Source: Octopus bimaculoides
Lineage: Eukaryota
NCBI RefSeq assembly: GCF_001194135.2
Contig: NC_068990.1
Coordinates: 7,955,997-8,019,996 of the forward strand
Length of the DNA: 64,000 nt
Reading direction: 5' to 3'
The stretch's first letter is position 1, and the number at the start of each line of letters is the position of its first letter. The notes below the pieces were generated by a model. The model did not search any database. It worked only from the letters and a program-made list of their open reading frames with translations, and was not told the origin of the DNA. The translations under genes were made by a program, and so were the position numbers. Of the stretch, positions 3,007 to 61,790 are shown one piece after another.

Positions 3007-3624
3007 ATAGTTGCTTGGATAAAAGGAGAGAACGAGCTACGGTATCAAGCAGATGTTGATCAGTAGTGATGGATAAGGTGATAGAGATGGAAATTGTCAA
3101 AATTGCTTTTAGGTGAAGGGAGTGAAGAAAGTGAAAGATTCTCGTGTTCCAATATGTCAAAAGCAAACCGTAGAATCCGTAGAATCCTATCGAAATCGTT
3201 CAGTTTTTTACATCAAAAATTTACTTTACGACAAATGTTTTACACTGGAAAGATATTTATCATTTGAGCAGCTTGCATTGAAACTAATAATACTGAGTCG
3301 AACTACGTGCAATATTCTTGTTTAATTAAGCTATTATTGCAACTATAGCAGCGTTTTGTGTTATAAATTTATTCTGATATCATTGTAAATCATCTTTGAA
3401 AGGCGTTTCGGTAACATTATCTGAATATTTTACCGTCTTTCGGTTTATGCTAACATTTTTATTAAATCCGCAAAATATGTTGAAATTTGTTTAAGGAATT
3501 TTTTTTTCTCTATTAGTATGATAATATTCAAGAACAATATTCGTATGCCAGTATTGACTATGCAAGCATACAGATATACACACACACACGCACATATATG
3601 TGTGTATGTATATATATTTACATC

Positions 3625-4856: not shown

Positions 4857-7800
4857 ATTTAGGTTATATACTATATCACTCACAAATAAATATAAAACAG
4901 GCAAATCTTCACAATACGGAGAAAATGATTAAAAATTGTAAAATAAGCAATGCTCTTTCACTTCTTTCTATTGAACCGTTCCAGTGTAGCATCCAAATGC
5001 ACTTCGAACTTCTAATGCAGGGTTCTAGGGAACCATAATTGTAAAACGTACGTAGGAACTAATAATATAAATTTGTGTTTATCGTAATATATTTTACACA
5101 AACACACACACTCACACACACACTCACACACACACACTCACACACACACACTTACATACTTCTCACACACACACACATATATGTATGTATGAATATATTT
5201 ATATGTATATATTCATGTATATTTGTGCATATATATAGTCATCTGATAAAATCGGCTGAAATGGATGCGTAATGCTGTATATATGTATTCATATAGACAT
5301 ATATACAAACATACATATATACATACATATATACACACAGGCACACTTACATACACACACACACTCACACACGCACACACTATTTACTATACTATTTCTA
5401 ATGCACACAACAGTAATGAAATTAACAAAGAACGACAAGCACCAAATCCAGTCCGAGCAGAACTAAATGAAGATGGTTGTGATTGTTCATAAATTGTCAT
5501 TATAAAGGGGGAAAAAATGGCAGAGACATATTTCATAGAAATTGAAGATGTGCCAAAGTTATCGGACGGAAGAAGTAGATACATAATGAAACAAAAGAAG
5601 AAAAATTCAAAGCAGACAAATATAGAATTAATAGGAGAAATGTATAAAAAAAAAAGATACATAAAGAAACTATGCTATGTAATATGCTCACCAGGCTATA
5701 ATTCTAGAAGATATGGCAAGGTAAATTTTCTTCACCAGGAAAAAAAAATGAGGAACAGAAATTTCCTGCAGAAAACTAACTCTAAAGCATATTAGATAAG
5801 GAGAAATTATATAGAGAAAATATATTATGAATGTAAATATAAAATTTTTAGCGAAAGAAATTGCTATATGAAATATACAGTTTATGTAATGCTATTTAAT
5901 AACATATTACGCTGGTTTTAGGAAAAAGAATGAAAACGAAATCAAAACAACGAAGAATAAATATTTCGAGAAAAAAAATACGGTGAATCGAATGATAAAC
6001 GTATGAAAATAGAGAATTCTTTACAGAAAAAAGACAAATAAGGCAGTTGCAGAAAACTACAGAAAATGTATAAAAAAAAGCAACAGCTTAAACCATTATT
6101 GCTCAAACAAATCAAAAGAAAACGAAGTCACGTGCTAAAATTAATGGATAACTATTATGTGAGACGATACAATGCAGGCTGTAGCAAATATTGTATGAGA
6201 ATATTGCAATGGTTGCAAAGATAAATATTATGGTCAGATTCTATAATAGAATACACAAAATGTATTTTTCCCGATTATGCATTATAAATCTGTACAAGTA
6301 TAGGCAAATGAAATTTAGTTGTGATAACTCCCGAAATAGAATCCTGAAAAATGATAAAAATTACATAACATAAGTGATACCCGAATCTAGTACCCATATA
6401 TAATGCCCACCATTTTAAGTAAATAATGAATAAGGCAACCTCAAATACAAACATTTAATAACCACCCATGAGATGCGACTAATCAAATTTTGAAAAACTC
6501 AAATATCTGCTATCATGGAAATTACGGAGATGCTCAATTCGCTAGAATTAGCCGTCAGATCTTTCTGAATGCACGCCCCACCATGTTAGAAAAAATGTCA
6601 TATCTGACAATGCGCAATACATAAAGAAATATATAAATAAAAATATACTAATGGAAGGACAAACGTTGATGATACTGATTGACTAAACAACAACAACAAC
6701 AACAACAACAGCAATAATCAACGGTGAATATTAAACACGAAAGCATGATGTACCAATGTGCAAAATTCATGTGTAGAAAAGGACAATTGTATATTATAGA
6801 GATCGACATGAAAAAGGATTTTGGAACATATACATACATAATTACTGTTGTTATTATTCATTTTACTAATGACAATAATTAATAATAATATCTTTACAAA
6901 TATTTTCGAATATTTATTCATTTAGTAATTTTATACATTGACACCGTTTTTGAATTTGGCGCTAGCTTTTCAACGGTTACCAGGCACAGCGAAACGAGCA
7001 AAGTTTTTAATACTAGGTATACAGAGAGACCTGCTAATGACAATTAAGGGAGGTAAGCTCTCAAAATTTGAAATCAACTGATCCAGGGATATTTATTTCC
7101 TCATTCTACGGCTTTCTGCCAAGATAGTAGGTTAAATTCTTTGTTCGTAGCTCGATTTCTTTTGTGCTTCTTGCATTTCCGCTAATTGGTGTTTTTTTAC
7201 AGGATTTTCGACTCTGATTTTCATAGCAATGCTGGCATCTAGTATGCCCTGTTATAATTATAAATTTGGATTTGCCATTTATCCGCATCTTGCTTGCTTG
7301 CCAATTATTTGTGGTTATTATTCATTATCCTTATGATAACGATTAAGAATAATATCTGTATAAATATTCTTGGATATTTATTCATTTAGTATATATATAG
7401 ATATATATANNNNNNNNNNNNNNNNNNNNNNNNNNNNNNNNNNNNNNNNNNNNNNNNNNNNNNNNNNNNNNNNNNNNNNNNNNNNNNNNNNNNNNNNNNN
7501 NNNNNNNNNNNNNNNNNNNNNNNNNNNNNNNNNNNNNNNNNNNNNNNNNNNNNNNNNNNNNNNNNNNNNNNNNNNNNNNNNNNNNNNNNNNNNNNNNNNN
7601 NNNNNNNNNNNNNNNNNNNNNNNNNNNNNNNNNNNNNNNNNNNNNNNNNNNNNNNNNNNNNNNNNNNNNNNNNNNNNNNNACATATATGCATGTATGTAT
7701 GTATGTATTTATAGTTGAAATTTACAGAAAAACAAGACGAAGACAGATGTATGAACAACAAACAGGTGTTAGTTTGTATTAGTATGACAAAATAAACAGA

Positions 7801-23048: not shown

Positions 23049-23522
23049 AGTTTGGTTGCTTGTTTCTCTGGAGATTGTCAAAATGATGTGGACGCCTTTG
23101 ATGAGAACCCAACAAGGTTAGAAAATCGATTAAGTTTGTTCGTCGTTTTTCAGTCTCCGGAGAAATGGCTAAAATTTGCTCTGTTTGTAATTATACCATA
23201 TGTCACGTATATATTATATCATACCTTGATACTGTTTGGATTAAGATCCCCGTTGACAGGCCGCTGGTATTTATAGAGTGTTAAACACTTTTGGTATGCA
23301 AATTAGGAAATCCTTCATAAAGTAACTGCTGCTTTTGTTCAGTATATAACCAGTTTGGTTGCTTGTTTCTCTGGAGATTGTCAAAATGATATGGATACCT
23401 CTGATGTGAACCCATTCAGCTTCGAAAGTCGGTTAAGTTTGTTCATTTTCTTTTTTCAGTCTGCGAAGAAATGGTTACAATTTGCCCTGTTTGTAATTAT
23501 ACCATATGTTACGTATATATAT
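23049..23522. repeat. Diverged tandem duplication of ~175 bp (23049-23218 and 23351-23522)
   Basis: Both copies start cagtttggttgcttgtttctctggagattgtcaaaatgat and end gtaattataccatatgt..acgtatata. Confidence 0.9.
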
Positions 23523-29536: not shown

Positions 29537-30640
29537 TTAGGCTGTTTCACATGAAATGTCGCATTTTTAATTACTTGTTATTTCAGTCATTTAAAAACTC
29601 AATTATGTACACCTTGCATTTAATCTGAACTCCTTTTATTTCCAAACAATATCCGTATACAAAATTCGTACCGATAGACCTTTTGAAAATTATAACAACC
29701 AAACTATGCTGAGTGATTTTCTCGTATGAGTAGAAACTGGGTCACTCTGCCGCAGAATCTCTACGGAATATCAAGCGGGCCTTTGGTATTGGTTTTGTTG
29801 ACATCGGAACTGTGCAGAGATGGTTCCAAATCTCTCGTTCAAGATAAAATAAACCAAGGTGTAGGCCAAAATCAGTTATTCAGCATGATGGATTAAATGC
29901 TTTGGTTGAACAAACTCCGAGAACAAAGGTTCGAAAATTTTCATTAGAACTCCAAACATCTCGTGCAACTGTTTTTGGACACCTGTGAAAAATTGGAAAA
30001 GTCAAGAAAACAGACAGGTTTGTTCCACATAAACTGAACGAGATTTTAATAAAACAGACACCTCAAAGTGTGCTCCTTATTGCTTTCACGACTGGAAGAA
30101 GACCATTTTTGTATCAACTCATTACTTTTGATGAGAAATCGATACTCTTTGACAACAGCTGGAGAACAGGACAGCAATTACATGCACGAGAGTCGTCTAA
30201 ACACTACCCAAACCCACCATTGAACCCTAAAATGTTAGTGGTAACTGTATGGTAGTCTGCGAAGGGAGTTATTCATTATTCATTTTTGAAACAAGCAAAA
30301 CACGGTAACAGCAACAACGCATTGCCAGAAAATTGATTCTATGCATGGGAATTTGAAAAAAGAAGCAACCCAGACTATGAACGTCCTTACACTCCCCAAG
30401 CTACGGTCCAAACGTTGCAAGCCTGAATTATAAGATTTTGCAACATCCTCCCTATTCCCCTAATATGTCTCCTACTGATCGCTTATTTAAGCGGTTTGAG
30501 CTTTTCATAAGCAATAAGACATTCTTAAATAGAGAAGAGGTAATTGAAGCATTCGGACAGTTTATCACAACAAAACAGGATTTTTTAAAAAAGAAACTTT
30601 AGATAAACGTCATAAATGAACATGAATCATACTTTGATTA
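29537..30640 (+). mobile_element. Decayed mariner element, near full length
   Basis: TA plus ttaggctg TIR-like start; FVPHKLN (WVPHEL), LITFDEK (DEKW), MLVVTVW and HPPYSPNMSPTD motifs, with stops and frameshifts. Confidence 0.85.
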
Positions 30641-33600
30641 AATTAATCAGTTCTCACACACTTCTGAAACATTTTATTGTTTATATATATATATATNNNN
30701 NNNNNNNNNNNNNNNNNNNNNNNNNNNNNNNNNNNNNNNNNNNNACAAAGAGATGCATTAGTATAACGCTCGGGAATTGAAAAAGTTTTTAACGTGTCGA
30801 GCTTACGCTCTCCCACAGAAACGAACACAGTAAGAAACAAGGAGAGAAAAAAAAAGGAGAGAAAAAATGTGTGTAGTGGTCAGCGATCTATCATGGCGAA
30901 TATATATATATGACTCTCTTATTCTTTCATTCTTTCTTTCTTTCTATCAGCCTCTTCACACTTACTTCGTTCTTTCCACTCTTCTTTCGTTCCCCTCTCT
31001 CACATTTCCTGGTTTTCTCTTCATTATCACCTTCTCTCCTCTTTCACTTCACTCTGTCCCTTTTCATTTTCTCTCGTCCCTCCTTAATTCTTCTATACCT
31101 CTGCCTCTACCACTCTCCTCTCTCTCCGCGTTTCCGGTGTTCGGCCAAGTCTAACCTTTGTTTCTTGGTTCGACTACCATGCGTGCAACATCTATATTCC
31201 TCCGCATGCCTGTCATTTCTTATGTCTCAGCCGTAAGGCGTCACTTCCATACGCACCAGCTTAATTTAATTCGTCCTTAGTCGAATGGCACCTGTTATTA
31301 ATGTTCTATTATATGCATTTGTATTTGTGTGCCATTTCTCCCCTTTTTCCGTCCATGTTTTCGTATACATTCGCTGCTTTCTTCCGAGGAATCAAGTGCT
31401 CTTAGTTTAGTTCTTCCTTGCGGCTGGCCAGATTGGAGCAATCTCAAGTATAACCAGCCGAAATTGCAAAGATAATCTGGAACTCGACAGAGGAAAGAAA
31501 ACTCCGAATGACCCGTTCTTGTTTTTTCTTGTCCCTTTTTTGTATCATCTGTCTGGATGGCTTGCGTTCTTGTCCCATTTTTTTTATTCCTTTATATATT
31601 TAAAGCAGTTGTATACTGCCAACTTAATGTGACAGTCCCGGTAAAGGAATCATACTGCTGCTAATTAGCCTTAGGAAGCTGGACCGCTTCCTGTCGGCCT
31701 TGACACATTTCCTGTGTCCCTATGTTTGTGAGGGGGAGACAAGCAAGCACCTCCACCTAGCCAAGCCTGCATTCAGGGACATGTTTCTGAGGACAGGCAT
31801 CTTTTCGGAGAAAGTACTAGGTCCCTATTTTTTCGGGTTTTACGTTATGAGTTCAAATTCCACCAAGGCCATGTTTATTATTCATTCCTTCAGGGTCAAT
31901 AAAATGGAAACCAATTGAAAAATAGGGTCTATGTAAGCCCCTACTCCCGCCCAAATTGCAGGCCTTGCGCCAGTAGTGGAAAGGTGATTTTTACATTAAT
32001 TATCGGTAGCTAAAAGGGAAAACTTTTGAGATTTTTACCAAGAACGCAAAACTAGAAAGAAATACATGGCATTCTCTTTTTTACTTCAACATAATCGCAC
32101 AGACAAAAATCGCACAGACAAAAATCGCACTACACTATGTGAATACATACATTAGTGCTTTTGATCTTGTAAGTAAATGCCTAACTCTCAGTCTCGATAA
32201 GCTTGGCTTTTTAGAAAAAGAAATTAGCCGACTTACATTTACAAATACAGTCTTTAAGCAGAAAAGTAAAACTATGCAAGATGTTTCTCACGTTTAAAAT
32301 GTCAAATTGTTTTCGTTATCTACTTTCCAGCGACGGAGGTTTGTATCTTCAAAGGAAGAATTTAAAGACTTGAAAACAGAAAAAGATCATACATACATAA
32401 CATGTAAATACATATATGTAAGTATACACGTATGCACATATATATCCGTACATGTATATATATGTGTGTGTGCGCGCGTGGACATGTTTCTGTTTGTGTA
32501 TACACATGTATGTATATATATGTACATGTGTGTGGATATGTATATGTGTATACTCACAAACACATATCCACATAAATATATGCTTACATATGCGCGTGTG
32601 ACATTCGTCTTTAAATTGTAGCCCGTTATATCCTAATTTAATAGTGCTCTATTTTGGCTGTATAACCGCAAGAAATTTTTCCTCACTTGTATTGTTGCAG
32701 TATTAAAATATATCACGTTGATATTTATTGCTGCGTTTTAGGGAAGGGTATAAAGGATAAAACTGGTTAATGCTTCTACACTGTCAATGCTATATTTTGT
32801 ATCTTCGATATAAATCATCATTGAAGAGTATCAACCCTTTTAGAAAATAAAAGCCACCCAGGAAGTAAAATATTTCATCGGAATTCCTTTCTTCTTAGTA
32901 AAGTATTTTACTCTATTTACGACGCACATGTGCCAGGTAAAGTTATTGAAGACATAAAATTTCCTCATCCTTGTGTATAGATTATAGCATGTGACGCTAT
33001 ATAAGTTAGCAGGAATTTTTGAAGTTAACAGAGGTACAGAGACAGACAGCATGCACCTATTTCAAACAACACCACCTGCAGTTCACCGCAGTGTTCTTTC
33101 TGTTCATCATTCATGTATACACATCTCAACCAAGTTCTGCTAAAGTTCTGTCCGATAGATTAGATTTGTGCACCAAAACAAAGGCGAAGTTTGAAGTAAA
33201 AGAAAATGCCATACAGGTATTTAAACCAAAACGAACTGTACCTTTTGTTGTAGCGTTATAAAAGATAAATTTAGAGTTAGAGAGACGAGAAAAAAACTGG
33301 AGTTATTCCAAAAGTCAAATATAGTCAATGGGCATCACCAACTGTGTACGTAAAAAAAAAAAAAAAAGAATAATAAAATCAGAGTGTGTGCTGATTTTTT
33401 GACTGGCTGAAACGAATGTCTTCAAGTGTTCAACTATCTGCTTCTGCGGAGGACATATTTGAGAAATTCAACGGAGGCAAGGTATTTTCTAAATTGGATC
33501 TCTCTGACGCGTACCTACAGATTAGTGTAGACGATGCACGTTCTAAATACCTAACAATTGACACATATAAGTTATCATTTGGCTTAAAAGTCGCCTGGCG

Positions 33601-34144
33601 ATTTTTCAACAGATTATCGCTGCAATTTTAGCGGACTGTGAATTCGCAATTCCATATCTGGATGATTTACTCATAAACAGTGAATCCCGAGACCAACAGG
33701 TAGATAACGTAAAATATGTGTTCAAAAAAATTAGGGACTATGAGTGAAGGAAAGTGTGATTTTTTCTTATTGAAAATAAAATATGTAGGAAAAATCATTG
33801 GCAGAAATGAACGTTGACAAGAGCCATCGAAGACAGATGCAATTAAAAATATGCTAAAGGCCGAAAAATATAACGACCTTACAAGCATTTTTGAGACGAA
33901 AATTATATTCCAAATATGCACACCGTATGAGCTCTATTGAATAATCTGCTAAGACAAGATATAAGGTGGACCAGGTCTGAAAATTATCAGGTGTTCAAGG
34001 AAATTAAAAAAAAAAGATTAACATCTGATTTGGTTTCAGCACACTTCGTTTCTGCAGTGGAGATTATTGTAACTTTAGATGCCTCTGAGTATGGGATGGG
34101 AGCAGTAATGCTATATGAATATAAAGATGGTAAAATGAAGGCGG

Positions 34145-34465
34145 GGTGGAGGCGCAATGGTCTAATGGTTAGGGCAGCGGACTCGCGGGCGGAGATTCGC
34201 AGTTTCGATTCCCAGACCGAGCATTGTGTGTGTTTATTGAGCGAAGACACCTAAAGCTCCACGAGGTTCCGGCAGTGGGTGGCGGCGACCCCTGTTGTAC
34301 TCTTTCGCCCCAACTTTCTCTCCACTCTTTCTTCTTGTTTCTTGAGTAACGCTGCGGTGGACTGGCGTCCCGTCAAGCTAGAGGAAAATATTCACCATAG
34401 AAACCGGGAAACCGGGCCCATGAGCCTGGCTAGGCTTGAAAAGGGCGCATAAAAAAAGATAAATA
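34145..34465 (+). mobile_element. tRNA-head SINE family C inserted in Gypsy RNaseH, with 13-bp TSD
   Basis: A-box-like ggcgcaatggtctaatgg, B-box-like gtttcgattcc, A-rich tail. TSD aaaatgaaggcgg (34132-34144) / aaaatgagggcgg (34466-34478). The Gypsy coding sequence resumes after it. Confidence 0.85.
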
Positions 34466-35965
34466 AAAATGAGGGCGGTAGTTCATGCCTCACTTACACT
34501 GATATCAGCAGAAAAAAAAAAACTTACTGCTAAATCGTAAAAGAGGGTTTAGCGATTATTTTTGCCGCAAAAAAGTTTCATAGATTTTTACACGGTAGGA
34601 ATTTTCGACTACAGACTCATCATTGTTCGTTATTATTTATATATGGGTCGAAGAAAGGAATCCCTACCCATACTGCTAATAGGCTGCCACTCTGGTGTAC
34701 TATATTATGGAACTATGATTTTAAGATTGAGTATATACAATCTAAGAAATTAAGTCATGCTGATTGTTTATCAAGACTGATTTCAAAAAGTGCTGAAGCA
34801 TTTGAAGATGACGTGATTGCTGCGTTGCGAACGGAAAATGAAATTAATGATGTTTTGTGTAACATCATACGTGAACTGCCAGTTACGTTACAAGATATAA
34901 AATTAAAATCGGAAAACGATAAATTCATTAAAAAATAAAAGAGCTGCTGCGGACTAAAAGAGATAAAAATATGAGCAACACCAATGCGAACCCATTCTTA
35001 ATGTGTGACAATGTGTTGATGTAAGCACAAAGTGTCGTAGTACCAGCTACACTACAGAAGCGATTGTTATAAGAATTTCACATTGGTTACCCAGGGATTT
35101 CGAGAATGAAATCGTTTAATTGAAAGTTATGTATATTGGCCAACATTGGACCGTGACATTGAAGAACTAGTGAAAGCATGCAGAAGGTGTGCCCAAGCTG
35201 CAAAAGTACCTCCCACTAAATGGCAACCGCTGCCAAAAACAAATATTCCATGGTCCAGACTGCATGTTGATTACGCAGGTCCACTTAAGGGTTTATATTA
35301 ACTTTTTATGGTGGACAGTTTTTCAAAGTGGCCTGAAGTGCATAAGTATAAAATGCCAACATCTGCGGTTACAGTACGTATTTTACACGAATTGTTCGCC
35401 AGATATGGTGTTCCTGATAACATTGTGTCTGATAATGGAACCTAATTTACCTTAGACAAGTTCAGAAAATTTACCGTTACATATACATACCAGGGCCTTG
35501 TAAATGATGGTGAGCAAGATTTTTCAAATATTGGAGAACATAACAAGGTCATTGCTGGGATTTATCCAATGGCTTAAAATTTTTAAAAGTTTTTTCATAA
35601 AATCCTTCCTTCCATCATTTCCAATAAACGAAAAAGCAGGAAAAAAAAACAAAAAAAAACAAGAGAAAAGATTTGTCATAGTTTAAAAGTTCTGAATTAT
35701 CTCCCTTGAAGACTGCCATATACAGGCAGAGAATGAGTTTCTAAAGAGATTAGAATAATTAAATTTCTAAAATCTAGGTAAATAAAGTAAATTAAGTAAG
35801 TAGTATGTAACGAAAATGTTTTAATTAATTATATAAGTAAAATAAAATGAGAGTTATTTTGTTTTTGAGATGTATAAATAAATTAATTGTAAATGTTGTT
35901 GCTATAAGATCATCGAATGTATTGAATAGTAAAGGGATATATAGAAATTGTCCACGAGGAAAAGC

Positions 35966-36128
35966 ATACTTACCTGGCACAGGGGTAAACCGTGATCAGC
36001 AAGGTGGTTCTTCCAGAGTGAGGCCCTTCCATTGCACTCCGGTTGGGTTGACCTTTGCGATCGTCCCTAATGTGGGCGATTCGGGTGCGCTATTTCTAAG
36101 TGTGGGGTCTGCGTTCGCGCTCACCCCG
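35966..36128 (+). ncRNA. U1: U1 spliceosomal snRNA, copy 1 (163 nt)
   Basis: ATACTTACCTGG 5' end; SL2 loop ATTGCACTCC; SL3 with taatgt loop; SL4 ggggtctgcgttcgcgctcacccc. Helix H shows covariation (gcac/gtgc versus vertebrate gcag/ctgc). Confidence 0.93.
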
Positions 36129-36150
36129 TAAATCAAACAAAGAATAGACT
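36129..36150 (+). terminator. Possible snRNA 3' box downstream of U1 (aatcaaacaaagaatagact); repeated at ~37497-37518
   Basis: Position right after U1 and resemblance to the AAA..AGA 3'-box consensus; same in both copies. Inference only. Confidence 0.35.
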
Positions 36151-37333
36151 ATCGCTAATGAATTTTTATGGTAGATAGTTTTTCAAAGTGGCCTGAAGTG
36201 CGTAAGTATAAAAAGCCAACATCTGCGGTTACAGTTCGTATTTTACACGAATTGTTAGCCAGATATGGTGTTCCTGATACCATTGTGTCTGATAATGGAA
36301 CCTAATTTACCTTAGACAAGTTCAGAAAATTTTGTAAAAGTTCGTTGTCGAACACGTGACCACTCCACCGTATCATCCTTGGTCAAATGGACAAGCGGTT
36401 CGCTTTGTTGACAATTCTAAGAGGGCGTTGAAAAAGGCGAACAATGAAGTAATGGACAACCGTGCGTTCAACAATTTCTATGAGTGTACCGAGTAGCACC
36501 TAATACGAATACCCCACCTGGAATGTCCGCCGCAGAAGCATCAGATCCGTTTTAGATAAGATGATACCGAGTGAAAATAGAAAACAGGAGAATAGCAAAA
36601 ACATTCTATCACATCTTTCTTTCGCATGCTCTCGGATGTTATAACCTGCCCGTCGAGGTATGGTATTTTTCAACATAACGGTATATAAATACTTTCTTAA
36701 AACTTTATGCATTGTTCATCTTTCGCATCTTACAACATGCAATTATAACAACAAATTTTTATCGTTACAACTGCTGTCTCGCATATTACATATTATTGTG
36801 TACCTAATCAATCTTACCATTACAATTGGTAACTACACTAATTAAAACCCGACCGTTACATATACATACCAGGGCCTTGTAAATGATGGCGAGCAAGCTT
36901 TTTAAAATATTGGAGAACATGACAAGGTCCTTGCTGGGATTTATCCAGTGGCTGAAAATTTTCAAAAGTTTTTTCTTAAAAACCTTCCTTCCATCATTTC
37001 CAATAAACGAATAAGCAGAAAAAAAAAAACAAGAGAAAAGATTTGTCGTAATTTAAGTTATGAATTATCTCCCTTGAAGACTGCCATATACAAGCAGAGA
37101 ATGAGTTTTTAAAGAGATTAGAATAATTAAATTTCTAAAATCTAGGTAAATAAAGTAAATTAAGTAAGTAGTATGTAACGAAAATGTTATAATTAATTGT
37201 ATAAGTAAAATAAAATGAGAGTTATTTTGTTTTTGAGATGTATAAATAAATTAATTGTAAATGTTGTTGCTATAAGATCATCGAATGTATTGAATAGTAA
37301 AGGGATATATAGAAATTGTCCATGAGAAAAAGC

Positions 37334-37495
37334 ATACTTACCTGGCACAGGGGTAAACCGTGATCAGCAAGGTGGTTCTCCCAGAGTGAGGCCCTTCCAT
37401 TGCACTCGGTTGGGTTGACCTTTGCGATCGCCTCAAATGTGGGCGATTCGGGTGCGCTATTTCTAAGTGTGGGGTCTGCGTTCGCGCTTACCCCG
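37334..37495 (+). ncRNA. U1: U1 spliceosomal snRNA, copy 2 (162 nt)
   Basis: Same as copy 1 apart from a few substitutions and a 1-nt deletion after ATTGCACTC. SL3 still pairs (atcgcct/gggcgat). Confidence 0.92.
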
Positions 37496-38088
37496 AAAAT
37501 CAAACAAAGAATAGACTATCGCTAATGAATTCTCCAATGGTCATACATTGGAGAAGCATTGTATTGTACATGCATAGTTATTTTTCGCTGCTATTTCAAG
37601 CAAGTCATTATCTACGGAATACTATTACGGACATTTTTTCTTGCGGACGAATGTGTATTTCGTATCCTATGTACATGTGCAGATTTTAGGCTGCTGTTTC
37701 TAGCAAGTCGATCCTTTATCTAATGGATTTAAATAAATTATCATATTCATATTTGATATATTTAGGTTCATATTTGATGATACCGAGTGAAAATAGAAAA
37801 CAGGCGAATAGCAAAAATGTTTCAAAATTCTTCAAGTTAGGTGAAGTTAAAAATATGGTAAAGAAAGCTGTGAGGACGGTGTAATTGTTAAACAAAATGG
37901 AAGAATGTTATTCCTGTAAAAAGAGGAACTGTCGAACATAAAAGATAAATTAACCAACTTAAAAACGATTCACAGAAAGAAAAAAAAAAAAAACAATCAC
38001 AAGAAAACAAACCTCCATGGAAGTTTTTGCAAGACACGTTTGAGATACCAACACCCAAACAATGGAGAAGTTAGGGGAGACTAATTCT

Positions 38089-38100
38089 AAAAAGAAGAGA
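38089..38100 (+). other. Polypurine tract of the Gypsy element
   Basis: aaaaagaagaga lies immediately before TGTTG. Confidence 0.6.
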
Positions 38101-38250
38101 TGTTGTGGAAGAATTCCGACTACGCCACAAGTGACTAAAAGTGGATTGGAATATTGCTATAAAATAAAGAACTATCAGCACATCAGAGTAAGCAGTTCAC
38201 AGTAATGAATACGTTCTTTGCCCCTGCTTCGTTAAATTATTTATCCAACA
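38101..38250 (+). repeat. Gypsy 3' LTR (~150 bp)
   Basis: TGTTG...CAACA termini directly after the PPT and downstream of the integrase C-terminus. No second copy seen in the window. Confidence 0.6.
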
Positions 38251-38255
38251 CCATG

Positions 38256-38290
<35 letters not shown>

Positions 38291-38410
38291 TGAATCCAAA
38301 CATGAACGAGCAAGAAAAGACACGGAAAAGCAACAACGCGAGGACGTAGAATAAGTACAGTGTTATTGGACGCTCGTGCAGTTACTGTTTATACCTCGTT
38401 CAGAGATTTA

Positions 38411-38821: not shown

Positions 38822-40844
38822 ACATATTGTCCTTTTTGCTATGTATTTCATACTATGTTTTCTACTGATTCTCTTCCTAATTTATGATGACAATGCGGCT
38901 GTTATATCTATCATGGTTAATACCTATGCAATTGTCTTGCCTTATTGATTCTCAGCAAACTATCTGTGTTGTGTATTCACAGATAAGTTGTAGTCGAAAA
39001 AAAAAAACTATGAGTTTCATTTGTGATAATTCCATCATTTGCATATAAGAAATTAAATGTTTCGATATAGAGTTATTATAAATGGTCTGGCGTAATTTTT
39101 AGAGATTTAGCTGCTACGTTTTGCAGGTTAAACGACCTTGTGTCAGCTTCCTATCAAACCATATTGGCTGGTTCTTCCCAGCTCCTTATATCTGAATCTT
39201 TCTATTTCGTATTTTCAGATATGATGAGTGTTTGCCTCTAGACATAATGTTTTGATGTGACATCATTATAGTTAAATTTCACTTGTCTTTTGGCTTACAA
39301 TGCACAAATCTAGTTTCCAATTCAATGTTAAGGCTTCAAAGATAAGATTAAATCAGAAATCCATATTAGTTTTCTTACTTCAATAGGATAAATCAATGAG
39401 ATGTCAAGATCTTTTGACAAAAATTTAGCTTACAATATTGTGTGATCTCCTTATCGATTACGTATAGATTACTATCTTGCCGAACGTCTTAGTTTGATAA
39501 ACTAAGTTCAAGCAGAACAAACCACACTGAAGCTACGTATTTTTCAACACCCCCGATACCTATGTAAAATATTAATACTAGCATTTACAAGTATTTAACT
39601 AACGCTATAATAAAAAAAAAATTCAGACACACAAGTATCTGGAGATTTATCCAGCATAAATTCATGGCAGCATTTCTCGGTTTCTGTAAAGAAAAACAGT
39701 CTCTGTTTCATTGATATATAAATGAGATGTATTTAGAAAAGGCAAGGTATAAACAAGTTTTAGATGTTTGAAGATACAGCATGTATTGACGTCATATAAT
39801 TTAAACTAATAAGATTTTTGTATTCGTCAAGTTGTCGTATTTTTTTTTTATAAAGTAATGCTCCAAGCACTAGATATTTAACTTCCCTGCTATGCCCTTC
39901 ATTAATTTCATTTCTGTTCCAGAAACAGCATGCAAATTCTAATATAGAGGTATGTGGCATAAAAATATCCTTCTTCGTATCCAATAAGAAAGCTAAATAT
40001 CTTCAGTTTACTAATAGCAGTAGGTTATCTGTAAATATCTCTGGAGATGAACTGCCAATTAGCATCGTAAATGACCTACAGCAGATTTACTTGCAGTCAT
40101 GCACGTTAAGCTAAGAGAAAACTGATAACAGAAAAAAAAATTACAATAAAACTGACCCCTACTTACGAGGCGATATGGATTAAAATGAATTCTCCCTCAC
40201 CGTCATTATAATAAAATGAAAAATACTGCACATTCCCTATATTTGTGCCCTTTGTGCAGTGGAAATATGTTGTTTCTTTAGGTTCTAGAAACTATTCAGG
40301 TAACAGTCTACCAGGCGTTAGTTCGTGTCCGACTTAAATGGTAATTTTTTTTCTCTAAAATGAGTTGAGATGGAATATTGAACTATAAGTCTTTTAAATG
40401 ATTACAAGCAGAAGTAAAACGACTTGGCAAGAAGCAATATAGATATAGCTACAGGGGTTAAGCAATTTAGTAGAGTGTTCATCAGAAAGTGTTGCTGCAG
40501 CAGCGAATTTTCCCAAAATACACTTCTATTTATAGTTAAAACGCTACATGACCTATTTTACTTTACTATTAATTTTATAGTGATCAGAATTCCGTTATGA
40601 CGATTTACTTACAGATTCAATGTATATGTTCAATACCAAGCCAAAAGTTAAATCTCGAGTTCAGATTTTATCTGTTCAACATTTATGTAATATATTCTAC
40701 ACCACTACTTTATTTCCACAACGACGCTGTTGATTCAGACTGGTTTCTCATTCGGAGCTGCCTAATCTAGCGCGCATTTTCACCTCTATTTTTCCCTATC
40801 CGACACTCAGTCTATATAGCTGATTAATATTTTATTCATCCTAA

Positions 40845-41277
40845 GGCGGCGAGCTAGCAGAAACGTTAGCACGCCGGGCGAAATGCTTAGCGGCATTTCG
40901 TCTGCCGTTACGTTCTGACTTCAATTTCTACCGCGGTCGACTTTGCCTTTCATCTTTCGGGGTCGATAAACCAAGAACCAGTTACGCACTGGGGTCGATG
41001 TAATCGACTTAATCCCTTTGTCTGTTCTTCTTTGTTCCTTCTGTTTTTAGCCTCTGGTGGGCAATAACGAAATATGAAACGTAAGCACGCCGAGCGAAAT
41101 ACTTAGCTGCATTTCGTCTCTCTTTACGTTCTGAGTTCAAATTCCGCCATGGTAGACTTAGCCTTTCATCCTTTCGAGGTCGATAAATTAAGTACCAGTT
41201 GCGTACTGGGGTCGATCTAATCGACTGGCTCCCCTCTCCCCAAATTTCGATCTTTGTGCCTAGAGTAGAAAAGAATA
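40845..41277 (+). mobile_element. Two tandem SINE family A copies (40845-41072 full length; 41085-41277 5'-truncated)
   Basis: Both align to the 2786 unit. Confidence 0.85.
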
Positions 41278-43985: not shown

Positions 43986-44185
43986 TTTCAAGCTTTGGAA
44001 TAAGGCCAGAAATTTCGTGGGAGGGACAGGTGAACCTCAGTACTCAACTGGGTGGTACTTACTTTATTGACCCTGAAGGATGAAAGGTAAAGTTGACCTC
44101 GGAGGAATTTGAACTCAAGAACTGAAGACGAACTAAATGCCGCTAAGCATTTTACCCGGCGTGCTAAAGATTCTGCTAGCTCACC
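43986..44185 (-). mobile_element. SINE family A (diverged)
   Basis: Reverse-complement similarity to the 2786 unit. Confidence 0.75.
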
Positions 44186-44479
44186 GATTTTAAACGAAGC
44201 AATATTAAAATAACATATTCTGCTTAAAAATAAAATAAAACAGCAAACAAGAAATTTAAAGGTTGAGAGGTTTGCGATCGGTATAGAAAAAGACTGCCAT
44301 TCATCAACTATGCTGTCATTTAATATCCACCCTTAGTACAGAAATAACATTATAAGAAACGCGAATATAATAAAAATTATATAGAAGACTACTTTCTTTT
44401 CTTCTAGGTGGAAACTTAGATTCGGCTTCTCCAGACCTGCAATCTCTCCAACATGCATTAACCGTCTTTTTTCTTCTGC

Positions 44480-49680: not shown

Positions 49681-50887
49681 AAAAATCATTTTAACAAATT
49701 CTATGAGACCGAAATATCTGAGATACATACTAATAATTACTAATATTTCAGTCGATTCAGTTTAGCCGTTCGAAGAAGATATTGGCCATATTGAAAACGG
49801 GGAAAAAAAGTCCAATAAATTGTAACTGATCAGTTTTATATGGACTTCCAATGTGTGTTAAGCCGCAAAAGTCTGTTTGCTGAATAACAAAATAAACAAT
49901 TAAATAAATGAAAAATTGAAAAAGAGACTAAACAAAGCAAGTGACAGTAGATTATTTCAAGTAACTGACGTCCCTTCTATAATTAAGCACGTCATTTTAG
50001 CAATGAAATGGAAATGATAATATTGTAACGAAGCGAGAAACCTTCTCATCACGAGCGCTGTCTGTGTTTTTCTATTTGATTATTGATCTGTTTCTTTTTC
50101 TAGTGTGTGTTGCTCTTTGCCTCTTGCACACAGTTCTTGATGACAGAAAAGAGATTCGCTTTCGAACATTCATAGCGTGCATTGTTAATTGTTGTGAACG
50201 TATTCTCTGAAAAGAGTTGTAACTCATCTTAGAGATTTAAAACCATCAGAAGACTGATATGTTTCATATGGAACAAAAAAGAGGCTCATATTCAAATAGT
50301 TTCTAATATATATATATGTGTANNNNNNNNNNNNNNNNNNNNNNNNNNNNNNNNNNNNNNNNNNNNNNNNNNNNNNNNNNNNNNNNNNNNNNNNNNNNNN
50401 NNNNNNNNNNNNNNNNNNNNNNNNNNNNNNNNNNNNNNNNNNNNNNNNNNNNNNNNNNNNNNNNNNNNNNNNNNNNNNNNNNNNNNNNNNNNNNNNNNNN
50501 NNNNNNNNNNNNNNNNNNNNNNNNNNNNNNNNNNNNNNNNNNNNNNNNNNNNNNNNNNNNNNNNNNNNNNNNNNNNNNNNNNNNNNNNNNNNNNNNNNNN
50601 NNNNNNNNNNNNNNNNNNNNNNNNNNNNNNNNNNNNNNNNNNNNNNNNNNNNNNNNNNNNNNNNNNNNNNNNNNNNNNNNNNNNNNNNNNNNNNNNNNNN
50701 NNNNNNNNNNNNNNNNNNNNNNNNNNNNNNNNNNNNNNNNNNNNNNNNNNNNNNNNNNNNNNNNNNNNNNNNNNNNNNNNNNNNNNNNNNNNNNNNNNNN
50801 NNNNNNNNNNNNNNNNNNNNNNNNNNNNNNNNNNNNNNNNNNNNNNNNNNNNNNNNNNNNNNNNNNNNNNNNNNNNNNNNNNNNNNN

Positions 50888-53914: not shown

Positions 53915-54107
53915 AGCCGGGCGAAATGCTTAGCGGTATTTCATCTGTCTACGTTCTGAGTTCAAATTCCACCGCGGTCGACTTTGCCTTTCATCCTTCC
54001 GGGTTCGATAAATTAAGTACCAGTTGCGTACTGGAATCGATCTAATCGACTGCCGACTGCCCCACTTCCCTCAAAAATTCGGGGCCTTGCGCCTAGGGTA
54101 GAAAAGC
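53915..54107 (+). mobile_element. SINE family A (5'-truncated)
   Basis: Aligns to the 2786 and 41085 units. Confidence 0.85.
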
Positions 54108-54812: not shown

Positions 54813-57800
54813 ATATTTTATTACGTCTTGTACATGGCTAATGCTTTGCTACGAACAATACGTATAGTGAGTTCTAATACCAGGTACCACTGTCTCCAAT
54901 CTAAATACGTGTGTGTGCATGTATGTATGTGTGTGTATCCATATATCCATCACTGTTTCTCTATTTGGTTCTCTTTTAAAATCTCTTGTACCCTTCTGCA
55001 CGCGTAACAGGCGCGCATTCACAAGTTTGTTAACAGCTAGTCCGAATTGCTTCCACGGTTGATTGCGCAAAATATTCAGCATTTATACAAAGATGTCAGA
55101 AATTTATATATAATGCTGGTGGATATTGTAATATGCATATTCATATTTTTATGACTTCTCAGTAATTACACAATGTATATTTTATACACACAAAAACATG
55201 AAACAGATGGGCTGTAATAAACTAAAATGTAAGAAAGTCTTAACCATGGGAAGAAATGATAGGAATATAAACATACTTCTTGGATGTTTTTAATGTAAGA
55301 AAGTTTCTTGCATAGTTAGTAGGCGATTTCTTTCTCTAATTCTGCTTAAACGTTTATATATGCAAATTAAGATATCCAATCTAGAACCCCCCCCCCCCTG
55401 ATATATTTCAAGTCTTGTACAGAAGGGACAGTCATGTTTATGGGTCAGAAGCCTGATTTTTAGCCACGGCACATTCCCGTGGATAAATGTCTTCTACTGT
55501 ATCATCTGGTCGACCAATGACTTGAGAGTGAATTTCGTAAACCTATATAAAAGTCAATCGTAATCATATTTGCGTTTATCTCCTTCCAACTTTTGACAAC
55601 CGCTGTTGGTTTGTGTCTGTCCCCGTAACTTACTAGTTCGACAAAAAGAACCAGGAGAATATATGCCAAACTTAAATCGATGCTTCATCACAGCTTCAGT
55701 GCCGTAATTGAAAGAGGTAAAACATAAAAAAAAGAACACAAGTAGATGGTAAAATATTCTCTGCGGTATAATATTCTCTTCTACCAGTTAGGGAAGAATA
55801 TTGGACGCCTATCATCTGACGAACAGCAAACAAAGTGCAAAATATTCTTCGGACGCTCCCTATTCTTTTTTAAGCACATTGCAATAATAGAAACTATGTA
55901 CTTACATTCTTATAATTTCCTGTTAAAATTATTTTAGAAATATAAATTTATGTATCAGTTCTTCTGCTTTACTCGCTTGAGCACAATTCATACATAAATA
56001 CATACATACATACATACATATATATACACACACGCACTTACATCGCCAACTGGTAACTTTTATCCGTCTTCTAAGGGTAAATACCCAAACTTTTTCTGCT
56101 ATTTTCCCAGCTACACTGTGTTCGAAATTTTCTTTCCTCTCTGTAAAATACCAACACATGTAGAGCTTCAAACATTTGTTTGTAATACGTTCTCATGCAT
56201 ATAATTACGTATGTGTGTGTGCATGTGTGTATGTGTCTATATATATATGCATACATATTTATACACATCCCCCACACACAAACACAGGTATATACAGTAC
56301 GCGTATATACAGTACGCGTGCACACAACTCACATACACTTTTCTATATCTCTCTGTGTGTATGTGGGTGTGTGTGCATGTTTATGCACGTACATGAATAT
56401 ATCAACAGCATTGTTTTACTAGATCTCCCTTTGAAAAGATTTTCTGAGTAAGTCTAAGATCTGAAGTATCAATAAATTTATAACCTGTTACTGGTACAGT
56501 CAAGGTTCAAAGACCTAACTCTCACTTAAGTTAGCTAGCCTAGTGAATATGCAGTTGACGGCATCAAATATCTTTAGTCATAAGATCAAGGTTGCTCAAG
56601 TAGAGCTCTTATCAAAAATGTTCATGCCGTAATCGTATTCTATGTTTATCAGGTATTACATTAAATAATATCAACGTATTGACGCGAGACTGCGATTTGC
56701 CAATGATTTGGTTTATATACAGTTGTCTAGAATAACATTATGACCAGTGTAATAAAACGCAACGTTAATTAACTTCATGAAAATGTAATCCAAATTCAAT
56801 GAAATTCTGTCTTAGTATTTTGTAGGCTCTTCTTAATTTAAAATATAAACTATCACCTAATTAAACTTGAGTTTGATCAAATTTGCAATGACAGTCGTAA
56901 TTTTTTAAACCAATCTTTTTGCAGTGCTGCTTTTAGCTCTGTAATTGTAAAAATCCGCTCGAAACCTTCACTGGAGATGTTCCAATCAATGTTCTACAGG
57001 ATTGAAATCAGAGATTTTAACCACTCCAGAATCTGTCAATTTTTTAACAATAAACCCTTAAAAATTGGGTTTTTTTTTTTACAATACGTTGGTTCATTTA
57101 TATGATTTAAAACAAGACTGAAATCTATTTCTGTTGTTCTAACTGCCCTCAATTCTATAAATACAGAATCTTAACGTTTAACAGTTCCTTGCAAATGAAT
57201 CGGCTCCCATGTCTCATTTTTGTTAGCTCATACATATGCCTGCTTGAATAGGAAGATCCGCAGTATTTGGTTTCGCCAAATCATATTATTGATGACCAAA
57301 CGTCATGTTCCTTTCACACAAATCTGTCTTGTCCAGATAAAACTTCTTTTTGGGCTTTGTCGTTTCAAATTTATTATTACCAACTCAAAGCAGAATATAT
57401 AAATCGATATTGCAAATTGATATAACATCGTTACATAGCAGAGGTGTGGAATGTTAATCTATAAAAAGTATTTTATTCATTCATGATGTAAACAGATTCT
57501 ATTAACAGCATACTAATTGAAAGCACAATATTGCTTCGAATTTTGGCTCTATAATTGTAAAAACCTGCTCAAAACCTTCACTGGATATGTTCTAATCAAT
57601 GTTCTACAGGATTGAAATCGGAGATTTTAACCACTCCAGTATCTAGACTCGGTGAATAAAATCTTTCCTGCAACTCCTAGTTCATTTCCAGTTCTATGAA
57701 TATTCTTCAGTAAATCAACATATCCACAGAATTTGCAACGCTTTAAGCATTCCAGTCAACGTTTAATAATTTCCCACCTAGCTGTAGTCTTTAAACTTCC

Positions 57801-58862: not shown

Positions 58863-59532
58863 TAAAAAATAAACTGAACTTTAAAGCAATAATAGATAAG
58901 ATTTACAATTCGTTAAATGGAACGAATTTTCGTACATGGTAATTAGACAGCATTAATGAAGTCGTCAATATCACAGCATACAATATTTTTCCTCTATATA
59001 AAAGGTATATTATTTTATGTTTGGATATAACAGAATGAGGTTGTTGCCATGAAATGTCCCGGGTCATCACAATTTATGTGGAAACTAAATTTGTTGCTTT
59101 CTTCCAAGGTGAAATTAAACCAGGGATAAAACTTGACACGCAATGTTTCCTTCCATCAATTAAATCATTTCATTGATGCTCAGGAATAATGTTAATGTTA
59201 TCGAGGTATGACATATTGGTATTTTCATTAGAAATTAATTAAAAATTTATATTTCGAAAACATGCCTTAATAGTTATTGGTTATTGCTCCTTTCTTATTT
59301 ATAATATTTATTTTTTGTTCAGTTTTGCCAAAATTCGAAGTAATATTATGTCATTAATTAGTACGGAGTTAATAGTATCTATCTACTTCATGAATGAACA
59401 ACATATTTTTATATAGATTAACATTTCATCATATCTTCTGCTTTGTAATGATGTTATATCGATTCACAATAACAATTTATATATTCTGCTTCAGGTCGGT
59501 GATGATAAATATGAAACGACAAACTGTTCTTA

Positions 59533-60658: not shown

Positions 60659-61790
60659 TGAATCTAACCTATATGAACTTTCGCTCCAAAATATTTGGAC
60701 CTCCATTCCACCAGTATAGAAGAGAAAACTGGAAAAGGTACCTAGAAGATTGTCTTATCATCTGGAATGAAACCTATGATAAACTAGATTTCAAATCCAC
60801 ACTGAACAATGTAAGCTCCAATATGCAATTTACAATAGAATATAGCAAGGGACAGCTCCCATTTCTGGACATTTTGATTATTAAAAAATCCAACAACCAA
60901 ATTACAACTGACATCTACTACAAACCAATAGACTCAAAACAGTATCTCCTTTTCAGTTCATGCCATCCTAAACACACCAAAATAAATATCACATTCTGGA
61001 TAAAAGGATCTGCACAATTGTATCTGACACAACCACTCGGAAACCTCGCCTACAAGACCTCAAAATAAGACTCATTGAACGTCAATATCCACCCGCACTT
61101 ATAGACCATGGAATTGAAAGTGCCAAGAAATTGGACACAAAACAATAAGGACAGCAAAACAAAACATCACACCTCACTTTAAATCACTCCCATACATATC
61201 AACCCAGAACCTCAGAAACAATGGAGCATAAAATTATACAAAATCTCCCTCTGCTCATTCAGGACCCGAAAATGAACAATATCCTAAAGACACATAAACT
61301 CCTCAAATGCAAAAGACAGCACAAATCACTCAAGTGACTCCTAACAAATGCAAAACTATACTCAATACATACGATACTAACAAAAATTCAGCCGACTTAA
61401 TTGTGGTACATGCCTATATCAGGCTGGGAATTCATAACCCAACAAGGAGAAACATTCTCAATTAAGACCAACTTCACATGTGCTTCCCAGAACCTTATCT
61501 ATGTCCTAAACTGCTCAGGTTGTGTCCACAATAATGTGGGCCAAACGACCCTTACTTTGAGTCACGCTGCATAAAGAACAGATTCATTTTCCTCAATACA
61601 AGCATATAGCCCTGAGCGAACATATCCACAGATGCGCAAGAAATAAAACACCGAATTTCCACATCTTTCCATTATACGAATGCAAAGATTCAATTCTCCT
61701 TACACGAACGCCTAAACAAGGAAAGCCTGTTCATACAAAAGTACAGACCATACCTTAATATACAAAACTTGAGTCCTTCAAAAATTGTGC
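60659..61790 (+). mobile_element. Penelope-like element fragment (RT C-terminus plus GIY-YIG endonuclease), decayed
   Basis: WKRYLEDCLIIW..QFTIE..LPFLDILI..TTDIYYKP..QYLLFSSCHPKHTK; then FTCASQNLIYVLNCSGC..VGQT..HIALSEHIHRC. Confidence 0.88.

Follow-up and report, generated by a model that had tools for sequence, protein, structure and literature searches.

The stretch of DNA analysed here, referred to as the window, comprises 64,000 nucleotides of Octopus bimaculoides (RefSeq assembly GCF_001194135.2, contig NC_068990.1, positions 7,955,997 to 8,019,996 of the forward strand). It carries two genes for the U1 small nuclear RNA (snRNA), and both of these genes lie inside the remains of a Ty3/Gypsy retrotransposon. 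The upstream gene sits in a segment, cassette 1, that reproduces an internal part of the segment around the downstream gene, cassette 2, and cassette 1 is bracketed by a direct duplication of integrase sequence, the two copies of which we call arms A and A'. This duplication is real, it is DNA-level and it is local: a U1 unit was copied about 1.4 kb upstream within the same dead Gypsy remnant. The features concerned are listed below, with positions counted from the first letter of the window.

35303-35472, + strand: arm A, 170 bp of integrase core sequence, 163 of 170 positions identical to arm A'
35473-36164, + strand: U1 cassette 1, 692 bp, made up of the U1 gene with 493 bp of flank upstream of it and 35 bp downstream
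35966-36129, + strand: U1 snRNA gene copy 1, 164 nt (RF00003, 126.2 bits, model positions 1-166)
36163-36332, + strand: arm A', duplicate of arm A, beginning with two bases (TT) that also form the end of cassette 1
36602-37775, + strand: U1 cassette 2, 1174 bp, bounded by 42-bp repeats, with no similarity to Pol
36852-37531, + strand: donor segment in cassette 2, 680 bp, the counterpart of cassette 1
37334-37496, + strand: U1 snRNA gene copy 2, full-length (RF00003, 121.4 bits)

The initial annotation of this locus had described a 170-bp arm duplication with seven mismatches, and this was borne out. The arms are direct repeats that align collinearly without gaps and differ at 7 positions, a match for which the chance expectation is approximately 1e-72 when corrected for all position pairs in the window at a base-match probability of 0.273. 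The same annotation had equated the insert with the donor segment, with a TT overlap at the right-hand end; this equivalence and the overlap stand, whereas the size of 690 bp that it had assigned to the cassette does not, since 692 bp were measured. When aligned end to end, cassette 1 and the donor segment differ by 26 substitutions in 680 aligned bases (654/680) and by four indels totalling 12 bases, each of them small (1-8 bp). With A denoting the arm, C the U1 segment, and B the integrase continuation G2 (see below) together with the left part of cassette 2, the order of segments is A-C-A-B-C. At the right junction (C/A), homology to the cassette extends to 36164 and homology to the arm starts at 36163, which leaves the 2-bp TT overlap at 36163-36164. 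The left junction (A/C, 35472/35473) is blunt, with 0 bases in common with either parental sequence. The window is a draft with 12 runs of N, and the entire region from 35303 to 37531 lies within a gap-free stretch of 19.6 kb between the N-run ending at 30744 and the N-run starting at 50323. Comparison with five Gypsy Pol comparators revealed no similarity of cassette 1 to Pol, and no further copy of the cassette was found within the 64-kb window.

Both U1 genes score well above the gathering score of RF00003, which is 69.5 bits. They were the only two Rfam matches above threshold in the 64 kb, both being full-length U1 on the + strand, and neither a permissive RNA-family scan of positions 35200-38300 nor a tRNA scan yielded anything beyond these two genes. 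Each copy retains the four-stem architecture of U1 and forms 41 of the 46 base pairs of the model. The copies differ from each other by six substitutions and one 1-nt deletion, and all of these changes are found at unpaired positions or convert a G-C pair into a G-U wobble; this placement at benign sites is not significant, the probability under neutrality being about 0.05-0.1 for the six substitutions (0.07-0.14 as computed for five). For comparison, three contigs (L003, L004 and L005) carry U1 genes of other organisms that are 86-92% identical to the present ones in the RNA only, with dissimilar flanks. Both copies and these three outgroup sequences have the same 5' end of the U1 RNA, the part that pairs with 5' splice sites, and with the same outgroups (L003 at 92%) the derived changes are split about evenly between the two copies. 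The unusual Sm-site region of both copies is also present in L003 and is therefore a lineage trait rather than a sign of decay.

The U1 gene itself has diverged (6/163) to the same degree as the non-coding sequence (p=1.0). Upstream of the genes, the copies do not differ at all from -110 to -17, a region that contains a TATA-like block near -30. The proximal 279 bp of the upstream flank (35687-35965) are 2.5% diverged, as compared to 6.4% for the distal 214 bp (35473-35686; uncorrected p=0.04). This is only a hint, which may reflect promoter constraint or patchy gene conversion. In the downstream flank, an A-rich motif (CAAA..AAAG..AGA) also follows the U1 genes of L003 and L004 and is poorly kept in L005; this is presumably a 3'-box-like element. 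Both U1 copies look usable. We also observed that L005, a TARA Oceans metagenome contig, contains two U1 genes about 0.7 kb apart (2315-2479 and 3031-3274), the second of which carries extra internal sequence (244 nt as compared to the 166 positions of the model). It represents another local U1 duplication, in an unrelated marine eukaryote.

The element that hosts the two cassettes is a single broken pol gene, the parts of which are as follows.

33142-38062, + strand: degenerate, 5'-truncated Ty3/Gypsy pol remnant (reverse transcriptase, RNase H, integrase)
33440-33741, + strand: RVT_1 (Pfam)
33979-34716, + strand: RNase H, RT_RNaseH (Pfam)
35116-35199, + strand: Integrase_H2C2 (Pfam)
inside both arms, + strand: rve (Pfam)
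36333-36601, + strand: integrase continuation G2, corresponding to the comparator residues directly after those of the arm and collinear in the Gypsy relatives L001, L007, L008 and L009
37818-38062, + strand: integrase C-terminal continuation G3, collinear with L008 by tblastx

The order RVT_1, RT_RNaseH, Integrase_H2C2, rve is that of a Ty3/Gypsy pol gene and is collinear with the five comparators, proteins of 1422-1445 amino acids (aa) from an exhaustive protein search, which cover 33142-36572 with residues ~446-1240 (tblastn). Depending on the comparator, the remnant contains 14-31 in-frame stops and 2-5 frame changes, and it is also interrupted by two insertions, each of them a U1 cassette plus its flanking duplication. 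About 450 residues at the N-terminus of the comparator polyprotein have no counterpart in the remnant, and no pair of long terminal repeats (LTRs) was found, there being no long direct repeats flanking it. The Gypsy sequence at this locus is a truncated remnant and not a complete element with LTRs and gag/protease.

Arms A and A' match the same residues of every comparator (e.g. aa 1076-1132 of P0052), and in the comparators the zinc-binding part comes before these residues and the G2 piece (aa 1138-1201) after them. Four of the seven differences between the arms are non-synonymous by direct reading. In all five intact Ty3/Gypsy Pol comparators, and likewise in the related elements L008 and L009, the arm is single-copy with G2 directly after it. 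Because the arm is single-copy and contiguous with G2 in L008 and L009, the extra arm and cassette 1 together constitute a derived 860-bp insertion into the integrase core. The closest relatives of the Gypsy remnant (L001, L002 and L007-L009), all of them in the ENA assembly ERZ21867824, are 63-73% identical over the alignable stretches, with a few short high-scoring segment pairs above this range and with L008 and L009 at 63-70% nucleotide identity. These relatives suffice to establish that the arms are single-copy and to reveal an extra block of 1216 bp at cassette 2; they do not suffice for dating. Positions 37851-38056, within G3, are collinear with L008 (tblastx E=8.8e-7), and weaker collinear matches are present in L001. 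The distant full-length Pol comparators gave no consistent match to G3, and its Gypsy identity rests on L008 and L001.

The extra block relative to L008 concerns the older of the two U1 segments, which has a flanking duplication of its own.

36560-36601, + strand: 42-bp repeat copy 1, at the end of G2 in the part coding for the integrase C-terminus, within the alignment to L007, L008 and L009
37776-37817, + strand: 42-bp repeat copy 2, 41 of 42 positions identical to copy 1

The match between these repeats has a chance expectation of about 4e-13, and their outer flanks do not match. In the alignment with L008, the window offset jumps exactly 1216 bp at cassette 2, which is the sum of 1174 and 42. 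Cassette 2, too, is an insertion, placed in the C-terminus of the integrase and bordered by a target duplication. The dead integrase therefore received a U1-bearing segment twice, first with a 42-bp and then with a 170-bp target duplication. We propose that cassette 2 arrived earlier, by an event of the same signature as the one that produced cassette 1. The initial annotation dealt with cassette 1 and mentioned neither the 42-bp integrase duplication that flanks cassette 2 nor a two-step history.

A comparison of the divergence of the arms with that of the cassettes had been set beforehand as the test for a single event. The arms differ at 7 of 170 positions (4.1%) and the cassettes at 26 of 680 (3.8%), which is no difference (Fisher p=0.83). 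These equal divergences are as predicted by one event or by two events close in time. The annotation had further held that both arms carry the same inactivating stop and that the duplication took place after the death of the Gypsy element. Indeed, the translations revealed one in-frame stop in each arm, at the same codon. Since the defects in pol far exceed what a divergence of about 2% per lineage yields, and since this stop is common to both arms, the element was long dead when the duplication occurred. The duplication is accordingly much younger than the death of the element.

One of the breakpoints coincides with a feature that has a bearing on the mechanism.

37530-37555: perfect inverted repeat with a 10-bp stem and a 6-nt loop, which begins at the right end of the donor segment

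Position 37531, the last of the donor segment, is also the second base of the stem, the first two bases of which are the TT that the arm shares. The hairpin is located 34 nt downstream of the 3' end of U1 copy 2, and the window contains only one other perfect hairpin of at least 10 bp that is not a microsatellite. The probability that any of the four breakpoints would lie by chance no more than 2 nt from the foot of a hairpin is about 0.001; it rises to 0.014 when microsatellite palindromes are counted. DNA folding of 80-122-nt segments around six junction sites gave -10.8 kcal/mol for the hairpin (z=-2.69, with 4 of 200 shuffles as good), and the folds at the other three cassette-1 breakpoints and at both cassette-2 junctions were unremarkable (z from -0.35 to +1.1). 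The hairpin lends good, if not decisive, support to the idea that a polymerase stalled there and was then re-primed elsewhere.

Our best reading of the locus is a replication-type template switch at the DNA level that formed the entire structure in a single complex event, and we give this reading about an even chance of being correct. A nascent strand that was copying rightwards through the U1 gene would have stopped at the foot of the hairpin, whereupon its TT end would have re-paired 1369 bp upstream (in ancestral coordinates), at the start of the arm. Resumed synthesis from the arm start would have generated the C/A junction and the 170-bp repeat. The blunt A/C junction, at which 519 bp were skipped, would represent a second switch in the same low-processivity episode. 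Both the involvement of replication and the single-event history are inferred from the arrangement of the segments. Such an arrangement resembles the products of fork stalling and template switching (FoSTeS) or break-induced replication mediated by microhomology (MMBIR), which have been described as complex, discontinuous duplications with 2-5-bp microhomology at the junctions, in which one event comprises several switches (Hastings, Ira & Lupski 2009, PMC2621351). The order A-C-A-B-C, with a hairpin at the donor breakpoint, corresponds to the discontinuous gain near a structure-forming sequence that characterizes these processes. The locus shares with them a skipped piece and a backward re-entry that duplicates the flank. 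With respect to the 2-5 bp of microhomology, there are 2 bp at the C/A junction and 0 bp at the A/C junction. Unlike the known cases, which range from kb to Mb, the present one spans less than 1.5 kb, one of its junctions is blunt, and it is an old, fixed event in non-coding DNA, diverged by about 4%, in which the participation of replication is deduced.

Several points weigh against this template-switch reading. The A/C junction has no microhomology and suits end-joining better than a primed switch, and a tandem duplication followed by a later deletion would have left an identical final sequence. Gene conversion between the copies could have made the divergences equal. The coincidence with the hairpin was noted post hoc, among six folded breakpoint regions. 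Lastly, the structure and the order of events are read from one assembly. A homologue search with the translated U1-spanning open reading frame (ORF) returned six ORFs that matched only its U1-coding part, with no sister locus or allele among them. Exact-pattern scans of metagenome and prokaryote genome collections gave either nothing or one unrelated U1 gene (L006, 80-82%), a homologue search with the G2 peptide gave no sister-locus candidate, and look-ups of two window ORFs returned no record.

A possible, though less probable, history consists of two steps: a 1369-bp tandem duplication of the arm, G2, the left part of cassette 2 and the U1 segment, and thereafter an unrelated deletion of 519 bp. 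The C/A junction would then be the duplication junction at the hairpin, and the deletion would have removed G2 and the left cassette part from the left copy, thereby creating the blunt A/C junction. This sequence of steps yields exactly the observed sequence and equal divergences, and it begins with tandem duplication, which is the commonest structural change; other local tandem-like duplications are present in the window. The blunt A/C junction suits an end-joining deletion, and the hairpin and the TT microhomology account for the C/A junction equally well. On the other hand, two independent events are needed, the indels that have accumulated between the copies since the duplication are only 1-8 bp long, and no account is given of the 42-bp duplication around cassette 2, the content of which has no second copy nearby. 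It is unlikely that the arrangement arose by capture of a fragment, that is by ligation of a U1 copy into a staggered break, the ends of which were then filled in, or by homologous recombination, within the arm, of a circle made up of the arm and the U1 segment. Blunt and 2-bp junctions do fit end joining, and two U1-bearing insertions with target duplications of 42 and 170 bp fit one recurrent insertion process. However, staggered breaks of 42-170 nt are ad hoc, the two novel junctions would have to be formed in a circle as well, capture offers no reason for a donor end at the foot of a hairpin, and no other cassette copies were found, be it in the window or by the homologue search. The initial annotation had suggested either a template switch or a circular intermediate. 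The location of the donor end at the hairpin foot supports a replication origin; at the same time, the blunt left junction is atypical of a microhomology-primed switch, the two-step history gives the same sequence and divergences, and the circle is inseparable from the other models.

That the structure is an artefact, in which two haplotypes or paralogous copies were misjoined, is improbable. The window is a draft with N-runs, and a copy divergence of about 4% lies within the range of haplotypes or paralogues. Nevertheless, the locus is placed in the gap-free 19.6 kb, and the novel junctions share 0 and 2 bp, which would have given an overlap- or k-mer-based assembler no basis for joining. Moreover, haplotypic duplication results in whole-segment tandem copies and not in the order A-C-A-B-C, and the differences between the copies are frequent enough for separate assembly. 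The most remote of the alternatives that we considered is an RNA-mediated origin, either by retroposition of a U1 transcript or by template jumps of a reverse transcriptase on a Gypsy RNA carrying U1. Reverse transcriptases are able to jump between templates and thereby create direct repeats. Retropseudogenes derived from U1 and short interspersed elements (SINEs) headed by U1 do exist (PMC4494074). Against this origin, the cassette has 493 bp of upstream flank and no A-rich tail or tail of the long interspersed element (LINE) type, and the Gypsy element has no detectable LTRs and lacks its 5' third. In addition, its pol defects go far beyond the 4% divergence of the duplicates, and one of them is common to both arms, so that the genomic copy was long dead. 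More generally, an RNA intermediate or a transposon is unlikely because 493 bp of non-transcribed upstream flank were copied, there is no A-tail and there are no terminal repeats, and the window contains no other copy.

The cassettes were also compared with known kinds of insertion. A transposon insertion with a target-site duplication was rejected: the duplications measure 170 and 42 bp, and terminal inverted repeats, LTRs, terminal direct repeats, a tail and another copy in the window are all absent. This agrees with the view, expressed in the initial annotation, that 170 bp is too long for a normal target-site duplication. Mobile-element readings of the cassettes were rejected for these and further reasons, the cassettes having no Pfam hit, no coding capacity, and no other RNA family or tRNA. 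A Helitron, which would have the ends 5'-TC...CTRR-3', a subterminal hairpin and insertion at AT without a target duplication, was rejected as well, since the ends misfit on either strand and both cassettes are flanked by duplications. Likewise, a retroposed snRNA pseudogene or SINEU was rejected, as the duplication took in the 493 bp of upstream flank (96% identity) and a tail is missing from both ends, whichever strand is read. U1 retropseudogenes and SINEU resemble the present locus in that extra U1 copies occur at new sites with direct repeats flanking them. Those copies, however, lack the promoter flank and have A-rich or LINE-derived tails and short target duplications (PMC4494074), whereas here the promoter flank was co-duplicated, no tail is present and the repeats are 42 and 170 bp long.

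Dada DNA transposons are described as targeting U1, U6 and tRNA genes (PMC3706591), which they have in common with the present case insofar as a mobile element is associated with U1 genes. Dada, however, inserts into the small-RNA gene, whereas here intact U1 units, the genes of which are uninterrupted, lie inside a dead retrotransposon, with no transposase or terminal repeats. Simple tandem duplication with internal deletion gives an identical end product and differs in the number of events. A further likeness is to multicopy and variant U1 families, such as the human vU1 genes (PMC3561869), which consist of slightly divergent paralogues with their own promoters that arose by DNA-level duplication. 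The present case differs from these in having two copies only, embedded in a transposon remnant.

Elsewhere in the window, another arrangement of the type X-Y-X was observed, in which 104-bp direct repeats (56931-57034 and 57541-57644, 91% identical) surround 506 bp (57035-57540). Positions 57356-57547 are an inverted 81% copy of 59327-59523, which are located 1.8 kb downstream. The region 56931-57644 may have arisen as another templated insertion of local origin that is accompanied by a duplication of its flank. Local direct duplications are present at two more places, namely 23040-23214/23343-23520 (178 bp, 86.5%, with 128 bp in between at 23215-23342), which adjoins an assembly gap, and 6846-6938/7310-7402 (93 bp, 82%, with 371 bp in between at 6939-7309). 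A dispersed family of short SINE-like repeats is represented at 2783-2952, 40842-41227, 44034-44186 (inverted) and 53944-54052, often beside microsatellites. Microsatellites of the types (AT)n, (AC)n, (TC)n, (AAT)n and (ATCT)n are very abundant, and most N-runs adjoin them. As judged by eye from ORF translations, the remnant of a mariner/Tc1-like transposase C-terminus is present at about 30070-30600 (+ strand). At 60673-61068 (+ strand), directly after an N-run, a 131-aa ORF resembles by eye part of a retroelement reverse-transcriptase region.

On present evidence, the locus is an ordinary local rearrangement, and one more case of a known process, the growth of multicopy U1 families through duplication at the DNA level. 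It nevertheless provides a clean, base-resolved example of how a small-RNA gene together with its whole promoter gains a second copy without transposon machinery, and the breakpoint at a hairpin foot is a feature of the sort that connects fixed structural variants with errors of replication. A dead retrotransposon can, moreover, act as a neutral landing pad for host RNA genes, here twice over. It is doubtful, but conceivable, that in this genome a single recurrent process disperses complete U1 transcription units as DNA cassettes and leaves target duplications of 42-170 bp. Such a process might consist of repeated template switching, set off where replication stalls at snRNA genes under heavy transcription and at the hairpins 3' of them, or alternatively of re-integration of U1-bearing circular DNA. 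If this were true, the two nested events described here would both belong to a general route of dispersal for snRNA genes, and if other U1 loci genome-wide show the same long flanking duplications, this would point to a specific route by which snRNA genes disperse.

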